64,000 nucleotides of DNA from NCBI GenBank assembly GCA_010909165.1, contig VJWM01000118.1:620001-684000 (forward strand), given 5' to 3'. Position 1 is the stretch's first letter. Every line of letters starts with the position of its first letter. Positions 25,674 to 50,100 of this stretch are shown here, in pieces. Position numbers and translations under genes: made by a program. Origin of the DNA: Anthoceros angustus. Taxonomy: Eukaryota > Plantae > Anthocerotophyta. The notes under the pieces were generated by a model. That model did not search any database. It was not told where the DNA came from and saw only the letters and a list, made by a program, of their open reading frames with translations.

Positions 25674-25989
25674 GACGCTGCATCATGCAATGTCTTGTTG
25701 TTCAACATTCTTTGGGCATGGCAGATTCTGCAACATTTGTGGGGCTTTTGCAGCCTTGTGCAAGTTTGCGAAAAGGTTCATTAAGACAATGTGCTTGTAC
25801 AGCAGCGCATGATGCTTAATAACAGCGTTCTTATAAATGTGTCTTTAATCGGACATCGTCTTGATGAACGCTTTAGCAAGCTTGTTGTGCAAGTAACTTA
25901 GGCACACCATGGTATAAGTTGTTAAGTATCAAGTGCCATGATAGGAAAATTCCGTCCAAGCCAACTATGATATATTCTTCATTCTTCTT

Positions 25990-26420: not shown

Positions 26421-26954
26421 TTGCAGGGTTGCGGTAGTGTACGTACTGGGTTTCGCATGGCATGATGGAACCGACATACGATTCGTCAAGGCTTTCAGCT
26501 GGACTCAATCGAAACTTGCCCAGCTGAGAAATGAGCTCCCAAACCTGCTCCCTCTTCAACTCAAGCCGTGTCAGATGCAAGATTAACGCCAGTGTCTTGC
26601 AGCCTCACACCCCAAAATGCACACCATGAGCGAACAGATTATTGTGCGGGAGAGAGTCCGCAGCTTATAAGCTGTGGAATCGAAATGAAAGAGCTTTGAA
26701 TTATTACCTCACCGCAAGGCCCCTCATTACTTGTGAGGACCAACAATTCAATCCTGAGCAGATCCCCTGTTGTTCTGAATAACTACTCGAGCAACGGATC
26801 GCTCTCGAGGGAGTGCTCTCTCGCACAAAAACCACGAGGTACCCGGGTCTCTGCCACCTTGCAGGCACCCATCCCCTTGAAAGCCAGACTTTCACAGAAC
26901 AACTCTAAATATACTACTTCAGGAAAATGTTTTTTCGATGATTCCTTTGCTACT

Positions 26955-27236
26955 GCACGTCGTCATGGCTTTCGTCCATGTCTTCATCGTTTTCCCACCT
27001 CTCATCATCACTTGAGTCATCATCGTCGTCCCACTCCTCTTCATTGCTGATTCCCGACCTGTTGTCATCATGGAATCATCGTCTTCTATGTCATCGGCTC
27101 TCATGTCCTCCACGTCCTCATCGCCACCGTGTTGGGGCCCGACATGCCACATGTATGCTGCCGCAAAATCCTTACACCCTCGGCCTATAGGCTGGCTACA
27201 TGGTATGCGCAAGCCTTGTGTGAGAGACGATGGCAA
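26955..27236 (-). pseudogene. Truncated duplicate of the F-box gene (5' end only)
   Basis: Same N-terminus MPSSLTQGLRIPCSQP. At ~26950 sequence equivalent to 19670 is joined to 21370, a ~1.7 kb deletion removing the F-box. Confidence 0.85.
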
Positions 27237-27625
27237 CCCGGCAGCTCCGATTTGTTAGGGCTAGGATGGCGAGTTAGTCTATGTGTATATATGTGCGCGA
27301 GATCGAGACCGAGACCGATACCGATAGCCCCGCCCTGGACGACCGAACTCTCATTCATCGATTTCTAACCTTGTGGTCTCGTGAACATTATAATCGGAGT
27401 GAGATTCACCACCTGCTGTATAGAAAGCTGTGTCTTTGGATGGAGAACTGGGAGAAGACCATGTGCCACAACGTTTTCCTCTGCCTCTATGCTTCAGGAC
27501 ACCACAGTCAAGGTGATTTTGCCCGATTGGGCGGAAGCTAGACGTCTATGCGGCGTCCTTACGTGACATGGTCCGTAGGACTCGAATCCGGTGGGCGTGC
27601 TCGGCGTGCCCGGTTGAATCCATCT

Positions 27626-27908
27626 GACCTCATATCAGGAAGGCTACCCGCTGCGTTTAAGCATATCACTAAGCGGAGGAGAAGAAACTAACCAAGATTT
27701 CCTAGTATTGGGGAGCGAACCGGAAATAGCCCAGCTTGAAAATCGTATGGCATCACTGTGCGAATTGTAGTCTGGAGAAGCGTCCTCTACAATGGACCGA
27801 GTCCAAGTTCTCCTGGAACGGGACATCAGAGAGGGTGAGAACCTCGTCGAGTCGGACCCTGTTGTTCCACCAGGTGCTATCCACAAGTCGGGTTGTTTGG
27901 GAATGTAG
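27626..27908 (+). rRNA. Diverged 25S/28S rRNA 5' fragment (pseudogene), possibly preceded by ~110 bp of ITS2-like DNA
   Basis: GACCTCATATCAGG...ACCCGCTGCGTTTAAGCATATCACTAAGCGGAGGAGAAGAAACTAAC...AGTCGGGTTGTTTGGGAATG matches the conserved LSU 5' end with substitutions. Confidence 0.9.
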
Positions 27909-28453
27909 AATGTATGACCACTACTAAGTTCCACGTGCGCTCCACTTCTAGGTCTTCAAAGCCGTCGTTCTTGCCCAATGGCTTGGCATCTTCATTTTTC
28001 TCAACTTCTTCCTCATCAACCGCTTGCGTAAGCACCCAGCAGTTGTGATCGTAGCTTATGCATCATTCCTTTGCCATTTCCGTTTAGGAGAACATTCGTG
28101 CGCCTATTGGGCCTCTTAGAGATGAGCTGAGCAGGGCAAGGCTGCCACTGCTGGCCATGTAGATTGGCCATTGCATGTGGCTTGCGTTTGTGTTTCTAAT
28201 ATGCACAAACACTGTTTATTTTCTTTCTTGTAATTCTTTATATGTAGTATGCCAATCAGGCAATTGTCATAGTGTATCTCCATTGGAATTGCTCAAGGAT
28301 GCAATCCAACAAAAAAGTACACTAGGATTTCTACCTAGATTTGCAACCGGATTTTATGCGGATTCTTCAAGAAATAACTTATTGCCTGTATATGTCGTGT
28401 AGCTACATAAAGTTTTCTTCAAGAAACAATAGATTTCTGAGGACTCGTAACAA

Positions 28454-29010
28454 ATGGAAACGAGCACACAATTACCGGATATATACACCATTTTACGACA
28501 TAATGGACTTGAAACAAGTGAAGATTTCCAATACATTGTAGGCGACTGTTTATTCGACTCCATTGCATATTTATTGAATGGAGCAATAACATCTGCGGAA
28601 CTGCAAATCAAAGCAATGTCGCAATTGGAAAGAAGCATAGAAGAAAAAGATCCCAATGCAATTGCGACTATGGAAATATATTCAGGTGAGGCCTTGGTTG
28701 CCATCCATGGACCAAATATCAGAAATATCAAACAATATATATATAATATGAAATTGCCAGCAAAGTTAAATGGCTTATGGGCTGATGCAACTGCCATCCA
28801 ATGGTTAAGTGTAGCCTTGAGGAGAAAGATCTTCGTATGGTCGATGCAAAGCAACAAGTTGATGTGTAAATATGATGCGTCTGCCTCTTCAATGTCAAGA
28901 CCTTCAAGGTGGCATATGTCAAGACCTTCAAGGTGGCATATCTTCTATCTCATATGCCAGCTACAAGTCATGTGATAACATGATGATGAACATTATCGTA
29001 CAATCATGGT
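28454..29010 (+). pseudogene. OTU-like cysteine protease domain, probably disrupted
   Basis: GDCLFDSIA Cys loop, LWADATAI, ALRRKIFVW. The expected His motif (DEHY, ~28985-28996) lies just past in-frame stops and a 24 bp tandem duplication. AT-rich. Confidence 0.65.
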
Positions 29011-29074
29011 AAACTTCTTCTTCCATAAGCTATAGAGCAAGGTATGTGAGGTACGGATTATTGAAGACGATGTC

Positions 29075-29378
29075 GTTCCTCGGCCAACGCAACGGCATAG
29101 GCCGGCAACAAAAAGCTAGCTGTTGTCCCGCGCTTATTCACCGCCGCCGCGTTAATCAGCGGACCAGCGCCCCGCGTTAATCAGCAGACCAGCTTATCGC
29201 CGTTCCGCATCGAACCGAGGCGCACCCGCAGCTTCCATTCGCTTCCCTCTCAGCAATTTCAAGCACTCTTTGACTCTCTTTTCCAAAGTCCTTGTCATCT
29301 TTCCCTCGCGGTGCTTGTTCGCTATCGGTCTCTTGCCAGTATTTAGCCTTGGATGGAATTTACCACCTGCTTAGGGTT
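29075..29378 (-). rRNA. Diverged 25S/28S rRNA fragment (continuation of the 27626 piece, inverted)
   Basis: Minus strand reads GGTGGTAAATTCCATCCAAGGCTAAATAC...GACCGATAGCGAACAAG...GAGTCAAAGAGTGCTTGAAATTG and runs into D2. Confidence 0.9.
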
Positions 29379-30401
29379 ATGGTTTCTTGATCATGAGAGC
29401 TGTACTATCAATGCATCACAGGAGCTAGACCTTCTTGTCGCTCCAGCTGGCTGTGTCAAGCGAGGGGGAACTACCCTGCCGAGCTAGCTGGCTGCGTCCA
29501 CCAAGCCGGAGTTCCACCTCGCTGGACACAAGAGTAAGGGGTGAAGATTTTTGGATGTCCCTTTCGGCATGCCATAGCCATGGCCACATGTGTACAAGAG
29601 CATGGCGGATTTCCTTCGAGGCAGAGGGAAATGAAATTACCTTGACCTCACAGAAGCGCAAGTGAAGAATACTTCAAGTGACTTCCAGGTTAGATTGAAG
29701 CCATAGCCTGTGATTGAACAATCCTGTCGATATTAAATGTTTGCAACAATTTCTTAGTGTTGCAACAAGAATAATTTCCTTGGTTGCAGCTTTGATTCGA
29801 TTAGGCTCTTGCAGACAGCTAAGAACATGAAGGTAGATATCTCTGTCGGCCTGTTGGGCGGTGGTGTGCAGCAGAATTTCTGACGTGCTATATAATCCCA
29901 GGAACTCGAATCCTCTTTGCATGCGGGGGCTATGGCGGATGAAGGCACGATCATCCTCTGCTCCTATAGGCTCGACTGTCCTGACCCACAGTGTCCGCAC
30001 ATCCTGATGAGCCAAGCTAGACTGCTGCACAAACAGAGACTCAGGCCTCATCTGACTTTGGACATGTACATGTACAGGGACCAGTAGTCTCTGAACCAAT
30101 CCATGGCTCGGCTCCGGACATGGCTGGACAGATTAGTCAGCTTACTCTCCCTCGTCACTCTCTCACATTCCCCATCTAGTGTTCTCACCTGCAAATGATG
30201 GCCTGAGTTGATATGCAGGACAAAGCCAATCCCCTGGCCGATGTGTGAGCAAAAGCCTAAGTCTGTGAGCAATTCTTTGTCGTCCCAGGGTAAGCAAAGT
30301 GTTAAATTTCTCTTGCGGAAGTCCGTTGAGCCGTGTATACGCAGCGGTGTTCTAGTGAAACTCAATGTAACTTGACAAGGGCAACACTGGAGAATGTTTT
30401 T

Positions 30402-30504
30402 GTCTGGATGGTGTAGTTGGTCATGTTTTTGTCTGGATGGTGTTGTTGGTCATCACGCTAGTGTCACACACCAGAAACCCACAGTTCAAACCTGGGTTCA
30501 GACA
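30402..30504 (+). pseudogene. tRNA-Val(CAC)-derived sequence with duplicated A-box (duplicate of 22970)
   Basis: Nearly identical to 22970-23072. Confidence 0.75.
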
Positions 30505-32261
30505 TCAACAAGTTTGCGACACGATCACTGCACTTTGCAACTTTTGGTCATGCGGAATGCGGTTCAAGTAGGACTTGCCTTTGAGGACGGCACATTTTCC
30601 CTGTGTCTTTTTGTTTTCTTACCACTTCTTTTTCACCTGTACCTTTTCTTGTCCCATGGTGGTCCTTCCACATGGGAGGGGCCATATCCATCTTATCAAC
30701 TGTGGTGAAGGGACTCCAGCTCATCCAATCTTCTATGGAGCATGCGCAGCGAACGATGTATCCTCCGGGTGCCAGGCTCGTACGAGGCTAATACGGACCT
30801 GATCTGAATGTAGCGAAGGACGACTTCACACATCGTGGATTCTGGAACCGCATGAAGTGTTTGAGGATCCCTGTCAACCTGACGATCAACAACAGGTTGG
30901 GCTGTGCAATCATCTCCTACCAATTCATCTTGTAGGACTTTCCATGTGTGCTGCTTGCCAAATGTTCGAAAACATACCACGATTGCATGCAATTGAACAG
31001 CAGGTTTACGAAGCTAGCTCCAACGGGAGCGAAGGGAAGGAGGAAGAAGGGAAGAAGAAATTCGCGATTTCAGACTTTCTTTGACAAGGAAACCGCAATA
31101 TCCCGGTTCCCATTCAGGCGAGGCTGGGCTGCCAGTGATTGCGGTGCCCTTCGTCTTTGCTCCTTTGCACCTTACACGGCCGCTGCGGACCGTGGAAGAC
31201 GTGTCATATTTGCATGTACAGAGGGAGCAGCAAGCTTAAATTTTTCAATTCTCTTGGGAAGAAGAGCGGAGGGCGGGGCTCGTGTTCATAGCTGAGTCTC
31301 AGATGCGTTAAACTTTGGAGCTGGAATGGCGACGGCTTCCAGGTGACTGAAGCTTGGAATTTGGATTCCGTAGTATGTTACTCCTTTTCGCAGTTTTCAC
31401 AAATTGTGTGGAATGAGGAGAGCCGGCATCGCTCCTTGCGCACATTGTGCTGTGACTAATTGTTTTCCCATTGGATCAAAGGCTGACTGATAGCATCCGG
31501 ACAATGATGATGTAAGCTTCTCAATGCTGCAGGGCATGCCCACATGGCTGGCCGAGCTGGGCATTCTGCCACCCCAGTGGTCGGCCTCAATGGACCAAAA
31601 ATGACTGGAGATGATAAGTCTACACAATCTACTGAATCTACAGTGTAGGCAGGAACCGAACCATTTGTAGGCTTTGATTGAGCAGTAAACAACATTCCAC
31701 ACCCCGAATCATCAATTGCACTTCCCGACGCCGTTAGCAGGCCTCTTTCTTGGTGCCGTTGTGTCATTTATCCCATGCCCCAAGGATTGTTGACGTCCTT
31801 AGAAAACACAAGGTACAGAAGCCCCATTCAGTCACGTCCTCGATGCCACACTTTGTACACCTGCTGGAACAATGTGGAGGTCAGCTCTTTCAAACCAGAA
31901 TCCGCCATCGAAACACTTCAATTTTTTCCTCCTCCAGGACTGTGTTGCTTTACATACAGGTAGAAGGTCAGTCGAACCCCAGCCACATCTGGGAAGTGCT
32001 GCCAGGAAATGCCTTCCTTCTGAAGGCAGACCTTAGTGGACTAGCCTGCAGTAAAGATAAAGTCCCCTCCGTGCGGCGGTGGGACTCACTCCAGCTGTAT
32101 TACTCGAGATGGCTAACAGCTGTGCAACTATTATTTCAGCTAGAGCTGTGAAGCGGCGTTCACTACTGAAAGACCGCAGCAAGGAGCTCCAATGAGCACC
32201 TCAATCGAGCAAGGAGCTCCTTAAGCAGCAAGGAGCTCCAATGAGCACCTCAATGAGCACC

Positions 32262-32960
32262 TCAATCAATGGCTTGATTGAAAGTGCTGCTTTTGATGGT
32301 GGGTTTGCAAACCCAGTTTGGCATAGCTATGGTGAGCACAAGAGATTCAGAGAAGTGCGTAAATCTATTTTCCCGGAGAAGATGCTGCAAATACGCTATG
32401 CGTCCCAATCTCATCCAGCGGCGGTCCCAGCAAGCAATCAGGGTCGTCCATGTAGCCACATTCTTTGTGGCCAAGCTGTCAAAAACCTGGCGTGCATCTT
32501 CCAGTTCGCCACACTTTGAATACATGTCCACCAGGCATCTGCCAACAAACAAGTTAGTGCGAATGCCACTGTGCAACACATCACATCGCACTCTCCGGCC
32601 AGATTCCAATTCGGCGTCAAATGCACAAGCTTGAGGGGCAGCTACAAGGATGTGAGCATGCCCCTTCTATCCTGACTTCCGCATCTCATGGTACAGTTGT
32701 ATGGCCTCCTTAGCTTGTCCATGGTTGGCATGTGCAGAGATGATGTGCACGCGAAAACATCTGGTTTGCCTGCCCTGGTGGGCACATCCATGGCCTCCTC
32801 TAGCCTACCCCCACCTGCATACATGCGCAAGATATGGTTCCGCGAATATGCATCCGACTCGTACCCAAGTTTTAACACCGAGATCGTGAACTCATCGCCC
32901 CACAGCCACATCCTTCTTAGCTGTCCACAGTTTTAGCACAGTGCAAAACAGCGACCGAGA
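32262..32960 (-). pseudogene. Frameshifted PLS-PPR fragment, paralogous to the N-terminal PPRs of the adjacent gene
   Basis: KLGYESDAYSRNHILRMYAGGGRLEEAMDV and NLFVGRCLVDMYSKCGELEDARQVFD correspond to 34600-35110. Confidence 0.85.
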
Positions 32961-32999
32961 AACAGCCCTCGCTGAGCACTGGCTATTTCTTACTTCTTC

Positions 33000-35706
33000 T
33001 CACGGTCGACCCTTACAGCTGCAACAACCATCAGCGAATCGATGCACACGGTACCCATCCCTTACAACAATGTCTCTGTGTTCGAGCCTTGACATGATCT
33101 CCGTTGAACTGTGGCAGTCACTGCACATGCGTAGATTCTTCGTTACCACCAGAGGTGTCCCACTCGGAGTGTTCAAGAGACCAAACGCTAGGGCTAGTTT
33201 CTCAGCATGCCCACAAAGTGCATCTTCCTTTTCCTTCTCACTCAGTGGCTTCAACACCAATTTTGTGTGAGGTATGTGGCCTCCTTCCTGCTTCAGACGT
33301 GCATTCATGCTCTCTACTTTTAGCGCAATATCATCTTCTTTTCTTTCCCCCACCACAAATGTATGTACGTGCTTCTTCACCTCAATGGTCGCCACTGCAG
33401 GTTTTTTGTTAGCTCCTGCTACCAGTCTCCGTGTTTCAATCCTGTCTACATCCGTCCACCTCCCTGCATCTGCATAGGCATTGGCCATAAGCACATACGC
33501 AGATGCCCGCTGAGGGTCCAGCCTAACAATGCGTTCAAAACACCACATCGCCCTCTCTATATCCCCGTGACTTTTGCAGGCATTCAACAAAGATGTCAAG
33601 CCCACAAGATTACTTTGGCTCTCACATGATAACAGCATGTTCTCAGCCTCATCTAAATTACCTGCACGCCCAAGAAGATCAATCATGCAATTGTAATGCT
33701 CAGTTGTAGGTTTGATGCCATGCTGTTCAGCCATGGAATTAAAGTGCTTGCGACCCTCATCCACCAGTTCCCCATGACTGCATGCTACTAGAAGGCAAGA
33801 AAAAGTTGCATCATTAGGCTGAACACCGGCAAATAGCATCTCGTCAAAACAAGCTAGTGCCTTGTGGCCTTCATCACAAGTACCACACCCAGATATCAGG
33901 GCGTTCCATGTCACCACATTCTTTGTGTGCATGCTGTCAAAAACCTGGCGTGCACCCTCCAGTTCACCACATTTTGCATACATGTCCACCAGGCAGGTGC
34001 CCAACACTATGTTATCCAGCAGTCCTCTTTCAACAATCTGTGAGTGCAGCTGCCTGCCCTTCTGTAAGGCACCAGTGCTTCCACAGGCCTTCAGAAGGCA
34101 AGCAAAGTAACATGTCAGCCAAAATGAGGCCCTCCTCCTCCATTTGTCCATACACAACAAGTGCCTCATGTCCGAGCCCTTGCTGGGCATACCCAGCAAT
34201 CAGCGCTGTCCATGTCACCACATTCTTTGTGGCCATGCTGTGAAAAACCTGGCGTGCATCTTCCATTTCACCACATTTTGCGTACATGTCCACCAGGCAG
34301 GTGCCCACCAGTATGTCATCCAGCAGCCCTCTTTCAACAATCAGTGAGTGCAGCTGCCTGCCCTTCTGTAAGGCACCAGTGCTGGCACACGCCTTCAGAA
34401 GGCAAGCAAATGTAACATGGTTAGCCAAAATGAGGCCCTCCTGCTCCATTCGTCCATACAGAATAAGCGCCTCATGTCCGAGGCCTTGCTGGGCATATGC
34501 AGCTATCAGGGCAGTCCATGTGACCACATCCTTCGTGTTCATGCTGTCAAAAAGATGGCGTGCATCTTTCAGTCCACCACATTTTGCATACCCAGATATC
34601 AAGGCATTCCATGTCACAACATCCTTTGTGGGCATGCTGTCAAAAACCTGGCGTGCATCTTTCAGTTCGCCACATTTTGCATACATGTCCACCAGGCAGT
34701 TGCCAACAAACAGGTTTGTAGGAATACCACTGCGCAACACATCACAGTGCACTTTTCTGCCAGATTCCAAGTCGGCAGCAAATGCACAAGCTTGAAGGGC
34801 AGCTACAAAGACGTGACCATTCGCCTTCACTCCTGACCTACGCATCTCATGGTACAGTTGTATGGCCTCATTAGGTTTCCCATGTTTAGCATGTGCAGAG
34901 ATGATGGAACCCCACGTGATAACATCTGGTTTGCCTACCCTGGTGAACACATCCATGGCCTCCTCTAGCCTACCTCCACATGCATACATGCGCAAGATAT
35001 GGTTCCCCAAGTATGCATTCGACTCGTACCCAAGTTTGACACTGAGATCATGAACGCGTCGTCCCACAACCAAATCCTTCCTAGCTGTACACAGTTTCAG
35101 CACAGTGCCAAACAGAGAGACGGAAATAGCAGAGTCCATCTGCGCCAGAGATTCCAGGGCTCCAACGGCCTCAGAAAGCTTCCCCTGCTGGCAGAACGTG
35201 CTCACGGTTTCAGCCGTAACGACGTCCATTTCCGATGTTCCACGCCTCCTAGGTTCAGGCTTATCCGGAGGGCTGGCCTCGGAAGGAGAGGCACCATGTC
35301 CCATCTGCATATCCAAGGAAACGAGCTTCTCATCAACCCAAGCTGGCTTAAAAGTGTTGTTTAGCCACAGCACCTCGCCGGACCCCTTACGCCGAAAGTC
35401 AGGGGAACGGGAGCTCTTCTTATCTCCTCTGTTGTCCCACCACAGGGTAGGGTCCAGAAAAAATTGTTGCCACAAGTGCTCCTGCTCCTGGCAACGACCG
35501 GCATCGCTGGAAAACCCGTCCCTACCCACACACGTTCTCGGAAGGGGAAGTGCTGGGCTCCTTACACTGCTGCACCTGGAAGCTTTGAATGCCAGGGCTT
35601 GACTCCCTAAGATGAGGTGAGCGGGAGCTCCTGGTAGAATCCCTGTACACACACCAATTGCAATTTGTTGGGTCGACAACGGCTCCGGTTGCCATACTGT
35701 GGCCAT
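33000..35706 (-). CDS. PLS-class PPR RNA-editing factor with DYW:KP (GRP-type) domain and N-terminal OSB-type PDF motif; ~902 aa after correcting a 2-nt frameshift at ~34104-34116
   Basis: Transit-peptide-like N-terminus; WQQFFLDPTLWWDNRGDKKSSRSPDFRRKGSGEVLWL..PAWV; ~16 P/L/S/SS motifs; E1, E2; KPAVA box, CGHAEKLA, MCSDCH, HRFADGCCSCKGRP. ORFs 34030-35706 and 33000-34199 overlap, and the 102-aa internal repeat has a 304 rather than 306 nt period. Confidence 0.9.
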
Positions 35707-36324
35707 CGTTCAGGAACCCCTACCGGAAGATGAGTCTAACAACAGACTACTGAGGACGCCCAGGTACACTTTTTTTTTGGGTGTGGTGATCTAGACGCCC
35801 AGATACATCTCTGTGCACCACCACACCATACGAGCTAAAGCTGGGCCGACCCGCAATCTAAGGTACACCTTGTACCGTATGCTACTACCGTGCAGTTAAT
35901 CCGTATGCTTCTTCTTCTCCTACTAATGCCACTACCTATGACACGTCATGTGTGTCCAAATGGCTTAGGCCAAATGGACATACATTTATAAGAACGTTGT
36001 GATTAAGCATCTAAGCTTAGATCGGTACTTAGATGGGGTGCATAACTTAGATGGGGTGCATAAAAGGAGTGGATGCCCTTGGTGCAAGTAGCTTAGGCAC
36101 AACATTGGTACAAGCTGTTAAGTACCAAGTCCCATGACGGAAATCCGTCCTTAGAGGACTTAAATAAAATTCTTCTTCTTCTTCTATGAGAGACTCTGGG
36201 ATATGCGTAATGCGTGTTAATCTAGAAAAGCATGTGTATCTATCATGGCACGGAATGGATGCAAGTGTTGTTACTCCTTCACAGTTAGCCCCATCATCTC
36301 CATCACACAAGAAATTTGAGTTGT

Positions 36325-36456
36325 CGAATGGATACAAGTGTTGTTACGTCTGCAGTTTAGGTGAGTCGCCAGAGGGATGCAAGTGTTATTACATATGCAG
36401 CTTAGGTGAGGCACCGGATGGATGCAAGTGTTGTTATGCATGGAGTTTAGGTGATG
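36325..36456 (+). repeat. ~45 bp tandem repeat (3 copies, plus a partial copy at ~36258)
   Basis: Unit GGATRCAAGTGTTRTTAY...AGYTTAGGTGA; translates to GYKCCYVCSLGE / GCKCYYICSLGE / GCKCCYAWSLGD. Confidence 0.75.
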
Positions 36457-38733
36457 TTCATGTCCTGCTACAAAAAAGAAGTACAATAGCAAGAGCGCTA
36501 CTTTGAGAGTGTTCTTCGGTAATTGAACTAGATCATATAGTTCTTCTAAAATATAAGTTGGATTCACTCAAGGGTTAAAATATTGGTGCAAGTTATTGGT
36601 GTGGCATTAACATCAAGGAGCACGCATGATTGGGAGATTAATAAAATCCAATTGAGCAAGGGCAAAGAAGGGATCAAGTAGCATAGGATGGGCTGTGTGC
36701 TGTATTTGTGTACCTTACGTGAACCCAAGCAAATCAATTATGAACAGGCTCCTTCTTCTTCTAAGACACATCTCTCTTGAGCGAGTACTCTAATTTATTC
36801 TGCATCAAATGGACTAGTTACTCTATCATTGTACACAGTCCATTGCTACTATATTCATGTTTTTTTATGATCGTAATATTTGTAATAAATGGGAAAAACG
36901 TTTGGAACGTTTTTTCCATTTCTCATCCATTTTCATTTCAATTAAATGCTCCTTCCGTTTATGTAGTTCTCGAACACACATATCTGAAATGTTTATAAAC
37001 TATGCTTATCGTGGGCATGCTCACTTGAGTTTTAACTTCGTGGAGGGTTACGCCAAGCTTCAACTTGTTCATTGATGTGCACATGAGAAACGGTCGACCA
37101 AAGCTAGACTGTTTCTAGAGGATGTAAAGGTATTGTTGCTTCTAGAGGATGTAAAGGTATTGTTGCAGGAAAACTTGACAAAATTTTCCGCGTAATATCA
37201 TGGAAGGTTTGATTGATTCTAATATCCACACCACAAACCAAATTCACTGTTGGGCTCTTGCTATTGGTAGAAAAGCATATGTCATGGATTTCAAAGATCA
37301 ATTGAAATCATTGGCCTTATTATAATAGTCAAAAGCCATTAAGGATAAGGGCTTCGAGGTTTTATTTCATATTGACAATGAGAATGTAGGCACTTTCATA
37401 TAAACAATGAGAATGTGGGCACTTTCATATAAACAATGAGAATGTGTAGGCACTTGCCTTTGGTGTTCCATTTTTACATCATATCGACCATGAGTATGTG
37501 CGGGCATTTGTGTTTGGTATTCTTTTAATATAAACTCTGGACAATGCAAGCACACATCATAGAATTATCTATGCAATCCCCTTTGCAGCATGTCATATAT
37601 TTTTCACGTAGTGCGTTATTCCATGTATATATATATTTTCTATGTAATATATATTGTATATTTCTTGTAAATTTATTTATGATACATATTAAATTTTATT
37701 TTTTCACTCAATATAATTTTTAACAATGTAATTTTACTTATTAATATATTTTCATTAAAATAGAAAATATATATACCTTTATACCAAGAACATTAAAAAT
37801 CTATCGCAAACATTTTTCTCTACTCAACAACATAATTTTTATCTCAGTTTTCTTATTTCGTGAGACGACTAAAACGTGCCTCGGTGCATCGACATTTTTC
37901 CCGTCAGACATAGGCCTCGGGGCGAGGCATGAGAGGCGGGCAAACAACGAGCAACTGGGTAGGCGGGTAACAGGTAAGTGGGTAGTGGATAAGGGGTAGC
38001 GGGTAAGGGGTAGGCGGGTAGCCTCCCTCCGCCTCCTCTTTAGAAAGGCCTCCATTACTTCCGGGGAAGCTGCCCTCATCCATGACTTGTCACTTGCTCC
38101 AAGGACAGCGTCAACCTTGGCAACATCACATTGCATATGAATCTATCTAGGATATGCCCGACATGGCCTTGCTCAAGAAGTGCTTGATCACTATGCTACT
38201 ATGCAATAAGAGGAAATTAAATCACTCTAGCTGATCATTTCACGATTCACGATCATCACCACGTGTACGTCTCGCTATCCTGCTTGTTTGAAATCCGTAG
38301 GATTATAACACATCTCATGTTATAATCGAGAGAAAAAGTAAGGAACCCTTCTAGAAATGCACTCAGATGTCAAATACAACCCTTGCAAAACTTATCCTAT
38401 GCACGACATACAAGTATGACTTCACCTCGTAAAAGGTCCAGGTCCTTCTCTGCGCCGACCTTCCTCATGTGTGGTCTTGCTCGGAAGATTATTTAATATG
38501 TATATATATATATATAACAATGTTTTAGGTCGATTAATATCGAGATTGAGGTTCATAGATGTCGAACTATGGCAAGCCAAAGGCCTATAAATGTTGGGCT
38601 CCCACACACTATTTACTATTTACAGGTGTTAAGGCGTAGCGAGGCTGCGTTGAGGCTCTACCACATGCTTCATGATGGCGCGCCTTCTCCATGTTCCCTC
38701 ATGCCAGCATGTGCAGGTGCTTTTTCTCATAGA

Positions 38734-39645
38734 ATGTTGGAAGAAGAAGAAGAAGAATTTTGGAGATCTCAACTCTTGGTCTCGCCGTCTTGATGTCGTG
38801 TCCTGCTCTAATACCTTGCTGTCGTGTTTGTCTGGGTCTCTGTCTTACTGTGTGTATGCTTCGATTTGGAACAGGATGTGGACGTGGCTGAGTCGGCAGA
38901 CAAGGATCCGTCCAGCACGGTGGACGGCGCCGTCAGCAGCGACCCCCAGCCTAGCGTGGCTGCCGAGAGCCCGACGCCTACGGTTCTTCAGTTTTCCAAC
39001 GTGCTTCAACTTTTCTTTCAGCAAAACGTTTGCGGGACGGTGGACCTGGGCGTGCCTGTGAACGTGTCGTGGTTGAGCGAGTTCCTCCCCGACGCGCACC
39101 ACCAAAACACGGCCACCTTTAACCGCTGCAAGCTCAGCTGGGGCGAGCGGTGGGGAGTGACGGGCTTCCTGTTCAAGACAGGGAAGGTGAACTTCATGGG
39201 TGCTCGCAGGGTGTCTCTTGTGCACCGTGCAGCCAAAGAGATCGGGTGCCTCGTGCGTGAGGCGGGTTATACCGGGGCCTCAGCGCGCAACTTCCGAATT
39301 ACCAACCGCGTGGCAAGCGGCCATCTGCCCTTTGCGTTGGACTTGTTGCGACTCAACAATTACCTCAAGGATTCGCAGGTTACATACACAACTAATTCCG
39401 TTCCCATCGATGGGGAGCTCAGCGGTCTGAAGCATGAGCCGGAACATTTCAACGGCCTTCTTCAGAAAGTGTGTGTGCAGGGCAGGTTCGTGAATGTCAC
39501 AGTTTATGCCAGTGGAAGTGTGCTAATCAGCGGAGCCTTGAAGTCTCATCACTTCATACGGACCTTGGAACTGCTTTATCCCTTCCTGATGCGGTGTGAA
39601 CCAAAATATTCACAGACGTCTGGTACTACTCATGGAGCGACATAG
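38734..39645 (+). CDS. Highly divergent TATA-binding protein (TBP)-like protein; probable phase-0 intron at 38779-38874
   Basis: Both TBP repeats are recognisable: QNVCGTVDLG, ATFNR, FLFKTGKVNFMGA, NFRITNRVASGHLPFALDL, HEPEHFNGL, VYASGSVLISGA, LYPFL. The core (38875-39645) is uninterrupted. An upstream ATG exon (MLEEEEEEFWRSQLL) joins in frame through a 96 nt GT..CAG intron; this exon is inferred. Confidence 0.8.
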
Positions 39646-40329
39646 GAAGTAGTTGGGTGAGACGGGTGATAGAGGAAGTAGTGGGTAGGACGCTTCCAAG
39701 GAAGCACTTCATGACTCCTGTTAGCCCTCGCTGGGCGGGTAGCGATTGACTCTGATATTCTATTAGTGCTGTTGAACATTGAGAGAAATCAGTCTTTGAG
39801 TCCGAGCATGTGTCAAAGCAGATTGGGGTTAGGAAAGCCTCTTCGAATTCTTTGACTGCTGCATCAGCCACACTATCATGGTACTCAGTGCATTGGAATG
39901 GAGGCTTTGCTGCAACCTCTACCTCGCCACCATACATCCTCGTCACAAAGCTGTGCTGAGACTTGTTGCATATTTGCTGACTTCTTGCTTTCGATATATC
40001 ACTCGTCCGATCAGAAATGCCTCTTTATCAGAATTGTTTCCTACTGTTTTGTGTAGAACCCTGCTTTCAGGTCCTCGATATCAGCGCTGTCCACATCCTT
40101 GATTGACTAGGCAAGTCTATGAATTCATGGATAATCTGGATTCGGACCTACTCTGCATTTACAAGGATTGAATGAGTTACCTTTTTGTTGAAAATGGTGA
40201 TGTTACTCACTGCCGCATTCAGAATGGAGAGCAACATGTTTTCTTGCTACCTAGAGCCTGGTGCCTCGGCGAATTACAAGCTAATTGACGTGGATCCTAA
40301 GTCTGAGAGACTATCCTCAGTACATCCTG

Positions 40330-41790
40330 ATCAGACGGACAGAGTTGAAGAGGGAAGTGATCTTAACTTTGACTTTGACTTGACAGACGTGCAGGCGAAG
40401 AAGACTTCATGTGACTTCCAGCTTAGATTGCGGGCACAGCCTCTAACAGAACAACCCTCTAAACAAATATTGCAACTCTTGATTAGTGTTGCAACAAAAT
40501 ACTTCCGTTGTTTACAGATTTGTTTCGACTACGTCAAACCATTCAGTGGGCTCTTGCAGAGTGTGAGGGACATGAAGATATCTCTGTCGGCCTATTGGGA
40601 GGTGATGTTCAGCAGCATTTCTGACTTGCTATCCCAGGAAATCAAATACTCGTTGCAGGAGGCTATGGTGGATGAAGTGCCTAGCTAAGTTATGCATCCT
40701 TAGGTAGTCTAGGAACAACACCGAGCCCTTTTTTCCCAATGAACAGTTCCGAAAACTTGTACAGTACTGTACCTCCTGTGACATGCGCAGAATACAGATT
40801 GTAGCAGCCTCGCACACGGGAATGCAGCTTCATCCAAAACCAGCCCAGCTGCATTTGTTCAAAGCGCCAGGTGCGGCGGCGAGCGGTACCAGCATTGTCG
40901 GGGAGCCTGTGGAGCTCATGTATTTGTTCTGAAGCCGGTGGAGCCTCCGTGTTTTCTGTTTATGTTTATGCTGATGCTAAGGTAATAGCTCAACTCTGTC
41001 TGTTACCACAGTGAACCTCGGGAGCCTGTCCCAGTGCACATTGTTCTTGTCTTCAACCGACGCTACATATATATGCGTACAGGATTTGATCAGTATCTGC
41101 TTGGTTCTAGGGCTAACCGGACGTCCAGGGCATGCCATGTTTGGCAATGTTCCGGTTTCTTGGAACTTGCCGGATGGACATCTGCACTAAAATCGCAGTT
41201 AGCAGAATTGAGCAGTCATCTGCAATATGTAATATTGGGCTGAGGTGAAGCAGCGGTTAGGGTTCCGAGTAGGTGTATGCAGGTTGTGGAGACGACAATT
41301 CGCCTCCAAGGACGGCACACTCTTGTATACAAATCATATTGGGAGGCGAACGAGGTATGGTTTTAAGCACTTGTCATGAGTGTGAAAAAGAAGAGGATGG
41401 TGCAGTTGGTCATCACGCTAGTTTCACACACCACATGTCCACGTTTGAAACCTGGGTTCAGACATCAATGAGACAGCAAGGTGCACTTTTGGTCATGCGG
41501 AATGCGGTTCAAGTCGGAGTTTCAGCAGGTGTGTTCTGTCTTGGTAATAAGAGCAATCTGACCCAGATGGGCGGCTCAAGTCGGAGGTTTGGCACGTGTT
41601 CTGAGTTAGCAATAAGAGGAATCTGTGACCATCTTGGTGCGGATTGGCGCTTCAAGTCGGAGCTCAGTTTCCTTCAAGATTGTTGCGCAGGCGGTGTCGG
41701 ATACCCGTGTGAACTTTGAAACTCCTAGAGGACGACCTCACACATCGTGAATTCCGGAACCGCATGAAGTTTGAGGATCCGGGTCACCAT
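40330..41790 (+). repeat. Older, diverged relic of part of the 7.4 kb unit
   Basis: GTGACTTCCAG..TTAGATTG, TTAGTGTTGCAACAA, ATATCTCTGTCGGCCT, CTTTTGGTCATGCGGAATGCGGTTCAAGT and CACACATCGTG..GGAACCGCATGAAGT match 22200-23440 in order. Confidence 0.7.
41395..41464 (+). pseudogene. tRNA-Val(CAC)-derived pseudogene
   Basis: GGATGGTGCAGTTGGTCATCACGCTAGTTTCACACAC...GAAACCTGGGTTCAGACA. Confidence 0.7.
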
Positions 41791-42394
41791 TCTGCCATGT
41801 TATCCTCCGGTGCCGAGAGCGGGGGTATATGGCTGCCTCCTAGTTATTACCAGCATATGCTTATGGGCACGTCACCATATGCATATGCTTATTACCAGCC
41901 TCGAACGTTTACATGGAGGCTGATCTCTGTGACTTGTATCCTCAGCATTCCGTGCTCCCGTATGCGTCTTCTCAGGCCCTGCAAACACCTCTGGACACTT
42001 GATAAGCTCCAACCTCTCGCTGTGGCTGTGGTGAACACATAATATTACAGCAAGAAGAAGAACATCCAGCATCAATTAACAACATGACCACAATCACAAG
42101 AGGATGGAGTAGACCTTCCCAGGGCTTGCGCACTTCCAAGGTGTAGAAATCTGCTAGGCGCTTGAACTGTCGCTCTGTACGCTGACGTTTGCAAGTATCC
42201 TTAGCTGGCCATGTTTCAGCGTTCACTGTCACTGCAACTGCACCTCCACTCATGATCGTAAACAAGTTCCAACCCAGCTCGACTCAGCACCAGACCGTAA
42301 CAGATTAAAAAAAGAACCAGCCCAAAGTGACAACCTCTACAAGCCCGATCAATCATGAGCACCAGCTGCATACCATTGTTATTCTGCTGGCCAA

Positions 42395-42505
42395 TCCGGA
42401 GGTCGAGATTCTCGCTTATTCGTGCCATGAGGGCGCCCTTGGTGCCACTCGAAGGCAATCTCTTGTTACGGACAAAAACCCTCAGCTGCAACACGGACAG
42501 CTATC
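42395..42505 (-). pseudogene. SAP-domain exon interrupted by the Copia insertion
   Basis: LSVLQLRVFVRNKRLPSSGTKGALMARI fits the SAP consensus. It continues across the element to a TTTGCAG acceptor at ~47080. Confidence 0.55.
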
Positions 42506-42699
42506 TGTTAGAAATCTATAGGATTGGTGCAACACATCACATATTAGAGTTATGAGTATAAGTCCTAGAAGTATATAGGATTATCCCAGGAGCGAGATAG
42601 GGTTTCATACTATCGAGAGTATGACAAGGCCAAAGGCTATATATGTATGCATAGCACACCATTTCTAATGTCTTGAACACAGGAATTCGCTTTCTAACA
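42506..42699 (+). repeat. Copia 5' LTR
   Basis: TGTTAG...CTAACA; direct repeat of 46863-47057. Confidence 0.95.
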
Positions 42700-45600
42700 T
42701 GGTATCGAGCATGGTTCGGAGATGCGTAAAGTACTGCACCACCACTGTGGGACTCTTGCCACTTGTCTTCTATTGCATTGTTTGTAGTTATGCGACTAAG
42801 TGTCCGTGAAAGCTCGTTTGCAATTTTGTGAAGCTTGGTAGTAGTTTTGGTGCGAGGAACTTTTGTCTTGTCTTTGCATAGCTTTCGGTGTGCATATGGA
42901 GACTACGCGTCAAGTGGAGAAGTTTGATGGCGTGAACTTCACATTATGGAAGTTGAAGCTAAAATCTCTTCTCATTGACAGAGGATTGTGGAAGTTTGTG
43001 GAAAATGGACTTCCAGATGGCGCTTCTGAAAAGGATATAGACAAGGATACGAAAGCCTTGGCTAATATTATCCTGAATGTGTCGATGACATTCTCTCACA
43101 ATTGAGCGAGTGTGTCTCTTCGCAGGATGCATGGAAAATTCTTTGCAGTACGAGAAGAAGAGCATTGTGAGCGAAATGTCTGGAAAGTCAATTCTCCAAC
43201 TTCAAGATGGGTGAGGGCGACACCGTTCAACAACATGTCAACAAGTTGAAAAGCTTGGTTGATCAAATGAGGGAGGCGAGATCAAACCTTGAGGGTAAGG
43301 TGATCATGCTGAGTAGTTTGCCACCATCATGTAGGCAATTTTATTGTCTTATAGGGCATCCGTAGCGATGCGTCAAGTGACAATCAACCAACCTTTGATG
43401 AGGTGGTTAGATTACTCCTACAAGAGGAGCTTGATGGTTCTTTAGGCGCAAGGCAGGCTTGGCACTCTTCTCCAAGAAGAGCACATCACGGTGGAAGACC
43501 TCGCAAGCCAAGTCTCTAGAAGGGACAAAGGATACAGATGCAAAGAGAAAGGTGAAAGGCTTTTGTTATTATTGCAGGAAGCCCAATCACCACGCAAAGG
43601 ATTGTAAAATAAGATTGGCAGACTTGAAGAAAGGGAAATCATCCCAAGCTAATCAAGTCAGCGAGAAGGACCAAGAACACATCTTCGCGTGCTTCACCGA
43701 AAGAGATCAAGCGACTTCATCAAAGAAGGATGAGAGTTTGTATCTTGACTCGGTGCATCCCAAAGATTTCGCTTATAACCTTCCTTGGTTCTCAAGCTAC
43801 GAGGTATTGCGGAGGGGCATACGGTGGCGCTTGGTGACAATAGGTCACATGACATCAAGGAAGAGGAGTGTTACGAGTCCATCTTCCGGAGGACTATGTG
43901 TATTAAGGGCGTGCATCATGTGCCTCATCTTGCGAGGAATCTTCTTTCCGCAAAAATTGCCGATGCAGTCATGAGGTTGTGTTCAATTCCAAAAGGATTT
44001 CGGATCCAATCCGAGCAGCTGAGTTATCGAATGCTAAAGTGATTGCTAGCGTCCGAATAGGAAATTTGTACAAGTTGTGTGCTTCGTGGAAGGCAAGCTT
44101 GCACCTTTATGGACAGTTCGCAAAATAGCATTGGATCTATTGATTTATGGCATCAACGTCTGGGGCACATTGGTGTGGACAATATCAGGTTGATGAAGAA
44201 CCAACATATGGTTACAGGCTTGGATTTGAAAGAAGTGGGTGAGCCGCAATTATGCCAAGGGTGCATAATGGGAAAGCTACACCGAACTAAGTTCCCAAAG
44301 ATTGCAGCGCGACGAGCAAAGATGGCGCTAGAGTTGGTACACACGGATGTGTGTGGTCCAATGAAAAATTCCACTCATGGCGGAGCCCGCTACATTCTGG
44401 TGTTTGTGGATGATTTCACTAGGAAGACCTGGACATATCTTATGAAGGAGAAATCCGGTATTTACACTCTTCAAGGAATGGAAAGCCATGGTGGAGAACG
44501 CAAGTGGACAACGTCAAGACTTTGCGTGGTGACAACGGAGGTGAATACATCTCCACTAACTTCCAACGCTTTTGCAAGGAGCATGGAATTGGAAGGCAAC
44601 TAACCATCCCTCACACACCGGAGCAAAATGGAGTGGCGGAGCGCAAACTTAGAGTCGTGGAGGCTAAATGCATGTTACATCATAGTGGCTTGGAAGTACG
44701 TTTTGGGGTGAGGTCATGTTACAAGAACCTATGTTTTGAATCGAGTTCCAACCAAAGCTATTGTTGGAATGACCGGAGGAAGCGTGGTCTCAAGCCCGAC
44801 ATAAGCCATTTGAGGATCTTTGGTTCGATGGTTTATGCTCACGTTCAAGCAAACCCGAACAAAATGGGATCCAAAAGGCGTGAAGTGCCTTATGCTTGGA
44901 TACTCTCGAGATTAAGGGCTCGGTTGTATGATCTTTCAAGGAAGAAGATCATTTTAGCGACGTTGTATTTAATGAGGTTGTGGAACCCATCAAAGGAGTG
45001 GGAGCTCCAACCCCGGTGGTTATCATGAAGGATCCGACGGCGTATGTTGACGACCCCGATGAGGATTCGACTATGATGACACTCTTGAGCAACCCGCTCG
45101 AGCCCAACGAACCTTCTCAACAATGCGACATAGAGGGGGAGAAAGGGAAATTCGATGTCGCGATTGGAGAAGTAGATGAAGATCAAAGCATTGTCGTAAT
45201 TGTGAGAGGAAGCTCAAGTATTCGAGAGAGACAACCAATCTTGAGAAGATCAACGAGACAATGGAAACCTTCAGAAGATCTTGGAATCCATGAATGCATG
45301 TGTGTATGAGGAGGCATGGTTGGCGATGCGAACCACAAAGCCTAAGGAAGCATTGGAAGGACCAAAGGCAAAGGAGTGGAAAGAAGCCGTGATGAGTATA
45401 ACTCTCTTCTCAAGAACAAAACTTGGGCAATCACTCCTCTACCTCACGGAAGGAAGAGCATAGGATCAAAGTGGACATTCAAGATTAAGCGCAAGGTGAT
45501 GGAAGCATAGAGCTACAAGGCAAGGCTGGTGGGGAAAGGATATACACAAGTCCCGGTGTGGATTATCGATACCTTCTCCCCGCCGCTAAGATAGCATCTA

Positions 45601-46862
45601 TCCGAGCTCTCCTAGCTATCGCAGCCGCCGACATGGAGATACATCATATGGATGTTACATTGCGTTCTGAATGGAGATGGATGAAGAGATCTACATGGAC
45701 CACCGAGGGATACGAAATACCGGGATGCGAGGGAGAGGTATGTAGGCTACTAAAGGCTCTGTATGGTCTTAAGCAATCTGCCCTTGCTTGGTATCGTAAG
45801 GTTGATGTGTTTTTCCGGTCTAGAGGTTTCAAGAAAACCAATGCTGATTGGAATATCTATGTGAAGAGAGTGGGAGAATCCATAATTATCATTGCTGTTT
45901 ATGTGGACGATTTGATTATTGCTAGCAATGACATGGAACTCTTAGACTCAGTAAAGCAAAGCCTTAATGCAAGCTTTGACATGAGAGATTTGGGTGAGCT
46001 CCACTATTCCCTAGGAATAAAGGTGGAAAGGAATAGGGCTAACAAACAGATCTCTTTGAGCCAACAAACATATGTGGAGACCATATTGGAGCGTTTCGGC
46101 ATGCAAGATTGCAAACCCATGAAGACGCCAATGATCTTCAATGAGAAGCTATCGCAGGAGATGAGCCCTACAACCTAAAAAGGAGAAAGAGAAGATAGAT
46201 AAGACTCTCTATCAACGTGCGTTGGCTGTCTTACATATTTGGCAACAGGACAAGGCCCGACATTGCAGAGGCGGGAGTTGTGAGTCGATTCTTGGCCAAC
46301 CGGACAACGGCATTATCAAGCGATCAAGAGGATATTCAGATACTTGCGCGGCACAAAACATTGGAAGTTGAAATACCAAAAGGATCGACATGAAGAAGCC
46401 CAGGTGGTTGGATTTTGTGATTCAGATTGGGCTGGAGATGTCGATGGCCGCAAGTCTACCACAGGATATGTATTTATGCTATTTGGGGAGCCATTTCATG
46501 GAGTAGTAGGCGTCGACCTCGTGGCTTTGTCCTCTGAGCGGAGTACATGGCAATATCTGCAACAATGGAAGCAATATGGCTACGACGATTGCTCAAGAAA
46601 TGGGATTTAAGCGGTGCGAACCATCTTCAACGACAATCAAGGTTGCATTTACTTAGCAAAGAATGCTACTTTTCACGAGGACGAAACACATTGAAGTAAA
46701 GCATCACTTCATCGAGAGAAAGTTCAATCCAAGGAGATAGAGCTAGCGTATTGTCCCACTGGACATGCTGCAGATGTTTTGACCAAAGGGTTGACTTTAG
46801 AGAAGCACGTTAAGTTTAGCAAGATGTTAGGCTTAAAAGAGTAGCGATGTGTTGAGTGGGAG

Positions 46863-47057
46863 TGTTAGAAATCTATAGGATTGGTGCAACACATCACATA
46901 TTAGAGTTATGAGTATAAGTCCTAGAAGTATATAGGATTATCCCAGAGCGAGATAGGGTTTCATACTATCGAGAGTATGACAAGGCCAAAGGCTATATAT
47001 GTATGCATAGCACACCATTTCTAATGTACTGAACCTGGGAATTACTGTTTTCTAACA
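46863..47057 (+). repeat. Copia 3' LTR
   Basis: Follows the PPT and is followed by TSD CTATC. Confidence 0.95.
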
Positions 47058-47165
47058 CTATCCAAGTGGCCTCCCATCTGCAAACGAAAGCAAACAATGC
47101 AGACAATCGTAATCAAAGGAAGAGTAGATTTCGCTCTAAGACTTCCAACGCCTTACGATGGCGTG

Positions 47166-50100
47166 TGTACAGTGGCCCTCATCACCGTGACTGCCACCAA
47201 TTTACATATAAGCTTGCGATGAATCGCATTCCCGCCCTTGGGATCCGGCAAACACGAGCATTCTTAAGCTCAGAGGCGGTGAAGAGTACCAAAAAACTTT
47301 GCCTTGACTGCTTCCATGAGTTCTCCATTTATATCCACAGCCATGGCGGTGGCAAATGCGACATCGTATCGGGCAAGGTATACATATGTGTCCGTATGTT
47401 GCCTAACACTCGTATATCGCCTAACAACTCACCTGTGGGATGAAGTGGTTTCGGCCTCGAAACGACGGAGGCATGGTAGGCAGCAAGGCGTCGTCACAAT
47501 GGGAAAGGTTGCGCGGCTCCTGTGGCCTCGATAGAGGATAGCCGCAGAGTACGAGATATTCAAGGCAGTTTGTGGTGCGGTGTTTGAGGATGCGGTCCAC
47601 TTCATACATGGGTTTTCCAAGTCCAAGACGGGTGGAGGTCGGGAAGGGAGGGGCCTAGGAACGGCTTTAGCAGGAAGTGTGAAAGACGTTGTGGCACTTG
47701 TAGGAAGGAGGAAGGGCGAGGCGATAGGCCGCAGGGCCGATGACTGTCTGGAAAAGGTCCGATCCATCGATCGGCCAATTTCCGGATCCAGACCAAGGAG
47801 TGGGGTAGAAAACGAGTAGACAATAGCACCGATCGCTGGAAAATGTCGTGGTCGTCGATGGCGGTTGGTTTGTAGGATCTGCCGATTTTGTGCCTCAAAC
47901 ACATGTTGCCGAACTTTGAAGAACTGAGCCATTGTTGGAGGAAGTCCATGGCCAGTGCGTCGACAGCAGGCCACAGCTGTAACATGGTCTGGGATGAAAT
48001 CCATAAAGAGCAAAAAGGTGTTGTTCTGTCTTTGGCATTCTTAGAGTTGTTGAAAGCAAACTCGCTAAATGTAGATATTGCTCCCATTTTTCTGAGTCTT
48101 GACATATGCTCAAGAAGATCTTCAATGGTTTGAATAGCCCTCTGTAGCTCCATCGGTCTGGGTGGCTTCTTTGTTGATAGATACAATTTAGTTTGTAGTC
48201 CGCGATGCATAGCTTGCCAAAGCGAGAAGTAAACCGGGGTCCGATCACTTACTATGCCGTGAGGCAAGCCATGGAGCTCAGAGATATAACGAAGGTATAG
48301 CTCACCGCATCCATCGCTGAACATGCTTCGTAGTGGGGGCTAAGTGGATCATTCTCGTAAGTTTGTCGGTAAACACAAGGATCGCATCATATCCTGGGGT
48401 CAAAGGTAAACCCACTACGAAATCAAGAGTGACTTGCTCCCACGGAGTAAGGGAATGGGCATAGGTCAAGAAGACTGTACCTTAGTCCGGGAGCCTTGAT
48501 CCGTTGACAAATGCCACAAAGATGGATCCAAGTAGTGACATCATCGCCATTTTCGGCCAAGAATACTGCACTGCAAGTTGTAAAGTGTACGGTGAATGCC
48601 TGACCTGCAGAGGGAGTCTCATGAGCCTCAAATAGTATAAGACGAACATGTGGTAGTGGAGGAACATAAAGCCTACCTCGAAATGAAGAAGACACATTCG
48701 ATTGAGTCCATGCGCCCAGATCCGTAACTTGCAGAGCATCCTTAGCAATGGTCTCGCAGTAAGTCGCAAGGAACTCATCGATCCGATTTCCTTGTACATT
48801 AATAGCGTAGTAATAGTTGTTAAACGAGACAGGCATCCGCCACACGATTCTGCTCACCGAAATATGTTGAATCGAAAAGTTGTATTCTTTGGAAGTGCTC
48901 CACCAATGAGCCTCGCTTCCTACTCAAATGTGTTTGAGTTTGAAGATATTTCGATGGCTCGTGATCCGTCTCTAAAATGAATGGGGTGCCTCCGACACCA
49001 CCTCCATTCCTTGAGAGCTAAAACCTGTGCCAAGGTTTCCTTTTCATGGGTGGTCCAGTTAAGTTCAGCCCCTTTCAACTTGCGACTAAAATATGCTATA
49101 GATTGTCGCCCATGACCTCTATCTTGCTGCAACACAGCCCCGATGGCAACATCAGAAGCATCAGTAGTGACTATAAAGGGAAATGCTGGGTCAGGGTAGA
49201 TGAGCACAGGGGCAGAGATTAAGGCTGTCTTGAGGTCTTCAAATGACTCCCACTGTTGAGCCTGCCATGTCCACATTGCGCCCTTTTGAGTTAACTTCGT
49301 AAGGGGGGCTGCCCGATGGGAAAACGCCTATAAATTTCCGTAGTAAGATACTAAGCCGAGGAAAGATTGAACGCCCCGGATGATCTAGGCACCGCCATTT
49401 TGTACTACACATACCTTTTAGGGTCCACTGTATCCCATCTGAAACTATGTGTCCAAGGTACTCTATGGTAAGGTGAATTCACACTTCGCTTGTATGAATA
49501 GCTTCTCCGTAACCTAAGCAGGACTTCTCGTAGTAAAGTAATATGCTCCTCATCGCCTTCTGTAGATGAGTATATCATCTAAATAAACCAACACCCCTTT
49601 CCGATTAAATCACGATAGTGTCGCTCATCGCTTTGGAAGTGCTAGGAGCATTAACCAAACCAAAACTCATGACTAGCCACCATAGTGCCCATCCCTCGTG
49701 TTAAAAGTCGCCTTCTCGATGTCTTCATCAGAATACGGATTTGGTGATACCCGGCTGCCAAATCTAACTTCGTGAAGTACTTGGCCCCTTGCAATTGCTC
49801 AAGCATCTCATCAATCCGTGGTAGGGGTAGCAATTTCGTTTGGTGATATTGTTGAGTCCTCTATAGTCCATGCACATACGTAGTCCCCTGCCTTTTGCCG
49901 TGAAGAGAATAGGGGCCCCACACGGAGACTTTGAAGGACGGATGAATCCTTTCTCGCAAAAGGGCTTCACCGCATCGAGCTTCCTCCAATTCCGTGGGTG
50001 ATAATCGATACATCGAACGGTATGGGGCTTGATGCCCGAGTGAGTCGACTCTATCTTATGATCTGTTTCACGAGGGGAAGCCTTGGTGGCAACCCTTGAA

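Follow-up and report, generated by a model that had tools for sequence, protein, structure and literature searches.

A very divergent, intact TBP-like gene in a repeat-rich region of the hornwort Anthoceros angustus genome

The TBP-like gene and its genomic surroundings

The window, by which we mean the complete stretch of 64,000 nucleotides that was analysed (Anthoceros angustus contig VJWM01000118.1, positions 620,001 to 684,000), contains a gene that is unannotated in Anthoceros angustus and whose product is a member of the TBP superfamily (PF00352). Its ORF is found at 38824-39645 on the plus strand. The strand is free of stop codons from 38794 to 39645, and the ORF as listed (38824-39645) comprises 273 codons in an intact frame. 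The length of the stop-free run is by itself marginal evidence, as shuffled windows reach up to 287 stop-free codons.

The following layout is proposed for the gene. A TATAAAT motif at 38586-38592 (+), the sole occurrence of TATAAA within 38300-40400, is a candidate TATA box and precedes the first ATG by about 80 nt. The candidate coding exon 1 (38665-38778, +; 38 codons) starts with that ATG, has a frame that stays open up to the donor and is in phase with the TBP frame, and ends in an acidic run of six Glu. The ATG at 38734, from which the earlier note had started the gene, shares its frame with the one at 38665, and this frame is open through 38778. The candidate intron (38779-38874, +) measures 96 nt, has GT...AG borders, is U-rich and contains an in-frame TGA at 38791-38793. 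Its putative donor, the GT at 38779, is the only in-phase GT ahead of the stop and precedes the in-frame TGA by 12 nt, and its putative acceptor, the AG at 38873-38874, is preceded by 109 nt devoid of AG, a length reached by 12 of the window's 4108 AG-to-AG gaps (0.3%). The junction 38778/38875 that had been suggested earlier is thereby formally sound as a candidate (GT, AG, 96 nt, in phase). Ahead of the saddle the main exon lacks an ATG in frame, and one is gained only via the candidate intron. As far as can be judged from the sequence, the TATA motif, the in-frame first ATG, the single in-phase donor and the AG-free tract form a coherent candidate gene model of the plant type, in which a short acidic exon 1 (38665 or 38734 to 38778) and the 96-nt intron would be followed by an exon at 38875-39645 for a disordered tail and a TBP saddle that is complete with its two repeats.

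The product of the main exon counts 256 residues and can be divided as follows. The N-terminal tail (residues 1-46; 38875-39012, +) is rich in Asp, Ser and Pro, is modelled with a pLDDT of 40-62 and is not matched by TBP profiles. TBP repeat 1 (residues 47-140; 39013-39294, +) shows the order S1-H1-S2-S3-S4-S5-H2 according to Pfam, PDB alignment and model, in which the elements run from E48-57 to H113-129 with a pLDDT above 95. TBP repeat 2 (residues 141-242; 39295-39600, +) is delineated by the same three sources and by Foldseek. Its H1'-S2' loop (39370-39429, +; borders ambiguous in the alignments) exceeds that of canonical TBP by 17 residues, which bears out the insertion of some 15 residues before the stirrup that had been reported earlier, and is modelled as coil (pLDDT 76-87). 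A short C-terminal tail and the TAG stop complete the exon (39601-39645, +). The TBP core is devoid of introns.

The gene lies in plant DNA, with a PPR-DYW gene, an F-box-like array and retroelements as neighbours. A Pfam scan of 20 of the window ORFs retrieved the PPR-DYW gene, retroelement domains, and weak matches to DUF26 and to DNA-binding domains. The PPR protein, with E and DYW domains (33000-35706, -), has its best named relatives in the hornwort Nothoceros aenigmaticus (48-59% identity) and further ones in ferns, Ginkgo, lycophytes and mosses (33-47%), a pattern that by itself would indicate a land plant and probably a hornwort. Loss of one nucleotide in a T run near 34106-34126 divides the PPR gene between two ORFs that overlap, and the restoration of one T yields a typical PPR motif. 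The split could reflect true pseudogenisation or an uncorrected homopolymer error. Its position in a T run suggests that the assembly is not entirely free of such errors, by which the number of genes called broken may be inflated, and the break bears on all such calls across the Anthoceros angustus genome.

A tandem repeat of approximately 7.4 kb extends over about 16.8-32.1 kb and comprises two young units, with a similarity of 92-99% in the longest matched pairs (300 nt) and of 86-97% in shorter ones. An old and degenerate third unit (32005-41786), recognised by collinear matches of 70-88% to 24484-30876 and 17035-23445, encloses the TBP-like gene. The 4.2-kb block with the gene (36186-40372) has no counterpart in the two younger units, and since tblastn detected no second TBP-like copy in the 64-kb window, these units carry no TBP-like remnant.

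Several other elements were observed in the window. The first repeat unit contains an ORF of 562 codons (19964-21652, -) with an acidic head and, by eye, an F-box-like motif; it was not matched in Pfam, NCBIfam or PDB, and around 1.85 kb of it is missing from the second unit. Six copies of a 77-nt tRNA-Val-like unit are located at 17693, 18320, 22999, 25601, 30431 and 41391, only one of which (18320-18393) was called an intact tRNA-Val(CAC) by ARAGORN; the copies are either a tRNA-derived SINE or decayed tRNA genes that are carried along by the tandem repeat. Rfam identified the 5' part of a eukaryotic large-subunit rRNA (model positions 24-314) at 27647-27928 (+) in the second unit, which is an rDNA fragment outside an rDNA array. 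The retroelements include a copia-type element (43459-48324, with RVT_2 at 45558-46178) and a gypsy-type RNase H fragment (1478-1954). The sequence 42506-42699 recurs at 46863-47057 with 95% identity, and the two may be the LTRs of the copia-type element.

Fold, conserved residues and relatives of the TBP-like protein

All searches and structure predictions were performed with the product of exon 2. The match to the Pfam TBP profile (PF00352; E 7.6e-16, 58.2 bits with a curated cut-off of 22.9) covers both repeats, is interrupted in repeat 2 by the loop insertion, and excludes a resemblance to TBP by chance. The archaeal TBP models of NCBIfam match weakly. The product could be aligned across both repeats, end to end, with the solved cores of yeast, human and Arabidopsis TBP (E 5e-6 to 3e-5), and both saddle repeats are thus indeed whole within a single exon. 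When an alignment of about 52-53 distant TBP-family homologues was supplied, AlphaFold2, the use of which had been proposed in the earlier note, predicted a TBP saddle, with the full S1-H1-S2-S5-H2 pattern occurring twice (pLDDT 85.9; above 95 in the core). The prediction is not independent of homology, as folding of the single sequence gave no confident structure (pLDDT 38). A Foldseek search with the model had solved TBPs at its head, with an E-value of about 1e-14, a TM by target of 0.84-0.92, an rmsd of 1.7-2.0 Å and 22-24% identity for those of Arabidopsis and human, and searches of the ESM Atlas returned TBP and TBPL1 clusters only, the TBPL1 cluster at a TM of 0.90; the nearest feature cluster in the Atlas is 76% viral. 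The modelled sequence is compatible with the saddle along its whole length, and the Pfam match, the alignment-based model and Foldseek agree on a genuine two-repeat protein of the TBP fold.

The alignment with the human core recovered the kept and changed residues that had been read from the sequence before. Phe is present at the positions of Phe193, Phe210 and Phe284 (in ATF, FLF and EHF) and is replaced by Tyr at that of Phe301 (in VYASG), where the numbers are those of the intercalating Phe in human TBP (PMC3142196). Both central Asn (QN..., ITN...) and the E-P-E of the second stirrup are retained, and the Thr pair of the T-G-A motifs has changed to Met (FMGA) and Ser (ISGA). Repeat 1 accordingly holds the first Asn, two Phe and the Met, and repeat 2 the second Asn, the stirrup, a Phe followed by the Tyr, and the Ser. 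The Leu that follows the stirrup E-P-E in canonical TBP is a His. DNA kinking may survive, since the Tyr keeps an aromatic ring at the position of Phe301.

The first 200 residues of a protein of Penstemon davidsonii (P0019, KAK4492228.1), which constitute a canonical angiosperm TBP, served as the plant reference for identity and similarity. The full entry, a 'hypothetical protein', consists of two canonical TBP sequences fused head to tail and is probably the result of an annotation merge of tandem TBP genes. Similarity to the Penstemon TBP is better kept in the strands (40 of 75 positions) than in the helices (16 of 52). In canonical TBP the sheet of strands is the face that binds DNA and the helices line the outer face. 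Three Arg of repeat 1, one beside the first Phe and two in S3 and the S3-S4 turn, have been replaced by Thr, Ser and Gly, at positions that we take to be phosphate contacts in canonical TBP, and one Lys of S5' has been replaced by Ser. In helix H2, presumably the part of canonical TBP that is contacted by TFIIA, NC2, TAF1 and Mot1, the residues H, K, E, C and E are found where canonical TBP has R, R, K, R and K. The core as a whole is basic (pI 9.4), with a net charge of about +7 versus +12 to +21 in four of the five TBP cores that were compared. The division that the earlier note had drawn between kept and altered functions can therefore be followed at the residue level: the residues for DNA kinking and the stirrup are kept, and changes have affected the Thr pair, several of the basic residues that contact DNA, and helix H2.

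Identity to any TBP amounts to 22-30%. HMMER, run exhaustively against 1.84 billion cluster representatives, yielded 82 matches at E ≤ 1e-3, none of which exceeded 38% identity. The best full-length match (P0002) has an E-value of 8.5e-11 and 26-30% identity, and the named matches are scattered over a choanoflagellate, a ciliate, a fly TBP-like protein, an angiosperm TBP and environmental TBPs. The best E-value belonged to an environmental repeat ORF of 1226 residues (P0001; L002 9106-12786), which was set aside as spurious: the score derives from 16 short repeated matches, tblastn shows one weak match of 30 residues, and the match to this ORF probably reflects its repeats and no relationship with TBP. 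Neither an orthologue nor a close paralogue was recovered among 15 billion proteins, including those of a Nothoceros transcriptome, which is weak evidence given how sparsely the lineage is sampled; proteins from the window itself are absent from the searched collection, in which the nearest PPR matches are only 52-59% identical. A word-index protein search, scans of IMG/VR and the JGI metagenomes, and a comparison with PHROGs returned no match to the TBP-like protein.

The degree of divergence was also evaluated in a maximum-likelihood tree of 77 proteins of the TBP family. The terminal branch of the query is the longest (3.03; the median is 0.78, and the plant TBP has 0.17), which, with the identity of 24% to the angiosperm TBP, substantiates the extreme divergence that had been claimed for the protein. 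The query lies in an open polytomy and joins no group, and any placement is unreliable given a branch of 3 substitutions per site.

Coding signature, read data and possible origins

The GC content at codon positions 1, 2 and 3 of the TBP-like ORF is 0.58, 0.44 and 0.68, respectively, and its CpG o/e is 0.91, where the flanks show a flat GC content of around 0.45 and a CpG o/e of 0.54-0.72. The GC3 of the F-box-like ORF (0.64) is close to that of the TBP-like ORF.

Read data were available as the contigs of two runs, one of DNA (X1) and one possibly of RNA (X2). A single X1 contig spans 38457-40811 at a depth equal to that of its neighbours, which implies that the locus is single-copy in X1. 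X2 has no contig on the TBP-like gene and touches only a 39-nt repeat (40565-40603). With respect to the window, X1 displays two G-to-A changes and many losses of one nucleotide, approximately 26 in 5.5 kb and mostly non-coding; 11 of the 12 losses that were checked lie in homopolymer runs (e.g. those at 38721, 39087, 39209, 40182 and 40729). If real, the two of them within the ORF, at 39087 and 39209, would disrupt its frame. However, such homopolymer losses occur about every 200 nt throughout 37000-42500, also in non-coding DNA, and the window version is in register with the TBP profile across both positions; we therefore read the differences as platform errors and judge it unlikely that X1 represents a broken allele. 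The published hornwort assemblies were made from Nanopore data and polished with Illumina reads (PMC8075897, PMC7027989).

The reading that we prefer, and to which we would give an even chance, is that the gene is a very divergent, intact and working, or recently working, member of a TBP-related family that is restricted to the lineage and evolves by birth and death. The protein would sit as a saddle in the minor groove and kink the DNA at both ends, as the kept Phe, Tyr and Asn suggest, and would still present the acidic E-P-E stirrup, with which TFIIB and Brf interact in canonical TBP. What it has lost are the Thr pair, the three phosphate-contacting Arg of repeat 1 and most of the basic residues of helix H2, and because of these losses it would recognise different target sequences and escape from the regulators of TBP. 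By analogy with the animal TBP-related factors, initiation might then be nucleated on a different set of sequences, outside the reach of the usual TBP regulators. An origin as a retrocopy, followed by a long working life, is possible and forms part of this explanation. The further-reaching proposition that hornworts, or one hornwort lineage, maintain a birth-and-death family of TBP-related factors of which the present locus is a working member seems doubtful to us.

Instead of being in use, the gene could be a silent relic, which we regard as possible though not probable: the family would once have worked in the lineage or in a donor, and the present copy would be unexpressed or free of selection, and intact since it died only recently. 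This would suit the repeat-rich setting inside a degenerate tandem-repeat unit, the lack of an X2 contig on the gene, the main exon without an in-frame ATG and the marginal length of the stop-free run, but it is less easily reconciled with a register of the TBP profile that is kept over 256 codons without a stop or frameshift, with GC3 and CpG o/e values that have not relaxed toward those of the flanks, and with the coherence of the candidate gene model.

An origin outside the host TBP, by integration of a giant virus (Nucleocytoviricota), another large DNA virus or a mobile element, appears improbable. No viral hallmark gene was found among the 20 ORFs scanned with Pfam (out of 39 of at least 150 aa in the window), the IMG/VR scan was blank, and no convincing LTRs, terminal inverted repeats or target-site duplications surround the gene. 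Identity to viral TBP-like models is 8-17%, as opposed to 20-24% to cellular TBPs, and the candidate spliceosomal intron and the neighbour-like GC3 suggest a long residence in the host. The observations that point to a virus are the intronless core and the association of the gene with repeats, the viral majority in the nearest ESM Atlas feature cluster, and the protein P0005 (28-31% identity), which is encoded on a densely packed contig together with a viral alkaline exonuclease; nevertheless, P0005 is no closer to the TBP-like protein than protist TBPs are, and the tree shows no link between the two. Insertions of giant-virus DNA have been documented in a moss and a lycophyte, in a study that leaves TBP unmentioned (PMC4083422). 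A virus could also lie far back in the ancestry of a gene by now adapted to its host.

A processed retrocopy of the host TBP that drifts neutrally would have an intronless core in a plant, where TBP genes are intron-rich, but can be dismissed, since an intact frame with codon periodicity, free of stops and frameshifts at 24% identity to plant TBP and 3.0 substitutions per site, excludes neutral drift to such divergence, and neither a poly(A) tract nor a target-site duplication was found by the gene, although both would be erased at such an age.

Significance and comparison with known TBP-type factors

TBP is among the most conserved of eukaryotic proteins, and to our knowledge plants have only near-identical duplicates of it. 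In the literature that we searched, no description was found of divergent TBP relatives in hornworts or other plants: neither 'TBP' nor 'TATA' occurs in the Anthoceros genome papers (PMC8075897, PMC7027989), and plants go unmentioned in a review of the TBP-related factors (PMC3142196). If the gene is a working member of its family, it would be for plants the first alternative core promoter factor of the TRF type. It might then serve a specialised programme (e.g. in reproductive cells or in the transcription of repeat arrays), may itself stem from a virus, and would represent an alternative plant route to building the pre-initiation complex, in which the saddle, the residues for kinking and the stirrup for TFIIB are kept and the rest of the protein is rewritten. 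It would also constitute a natural experiment on the surfaces that TBP can dispense with. If the family is dead, the locus would still mark an unusual event of amplification or transfer in the lineage. It also shows that standard pipelines miss unannotated genes of this kind.

With canonical TBP (Arabidopsis TBP1 and TBP2, human TBP) the protein shares the two PF00352 repeats, the saddle fold, a basic core, the Asn at both minor-groove positions, Phe at three of the four intercalating positions and E-P-E in the stirrup. It differs in its low identity (22-24%), the replacement of the Thr pair by Met and Ser and of the fourth Phe by Tyr, the replaced Arg and basic H2 residues, the insertion of 17 residues in the loop and the intronless core. 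It is not an orthologue of canonical TBP, in view of its departures in conservation, in the Thr pair and in the basic surfaces.

Nor can it be filed with the viral TBP-like proteins or with the animal TRFs. The giant-virus proteins resemble it in being very divergent and intronless and in having the TBP fold (Foldseek E 1e-12 to 1e-9), whereas identity to the sampled viral models is as low as given above and the gene has neither viral neighbours nor a relative in IMG/VR. The metazoan TRFs are animal genes with orthologues across phyla, in contrast to the TBP-like gene, for which no orthologue was detectable; the tree, built without a labelled TBPL1 sequence, did not group the protein with them, and the TBPL1 match in the ESM Atlas shows a shared fold only. 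TRF2 has lost its Phe pairs and is not known to bind TATA, while the TBP-like protein keeps three Phe and a Tyr. What the protein has in common with TRF1, TRF2/TLF/TBPL1 and TRF3/TBPL2 (PMC3142196) is that of a saddle-fold paralogue of TBP in which the surface for reading DNA or binding partners has been altered. The TRFs are used for specialised initiation, and by analogy the same idea may apply to the TBP-like protein of Anthoceros angustus.
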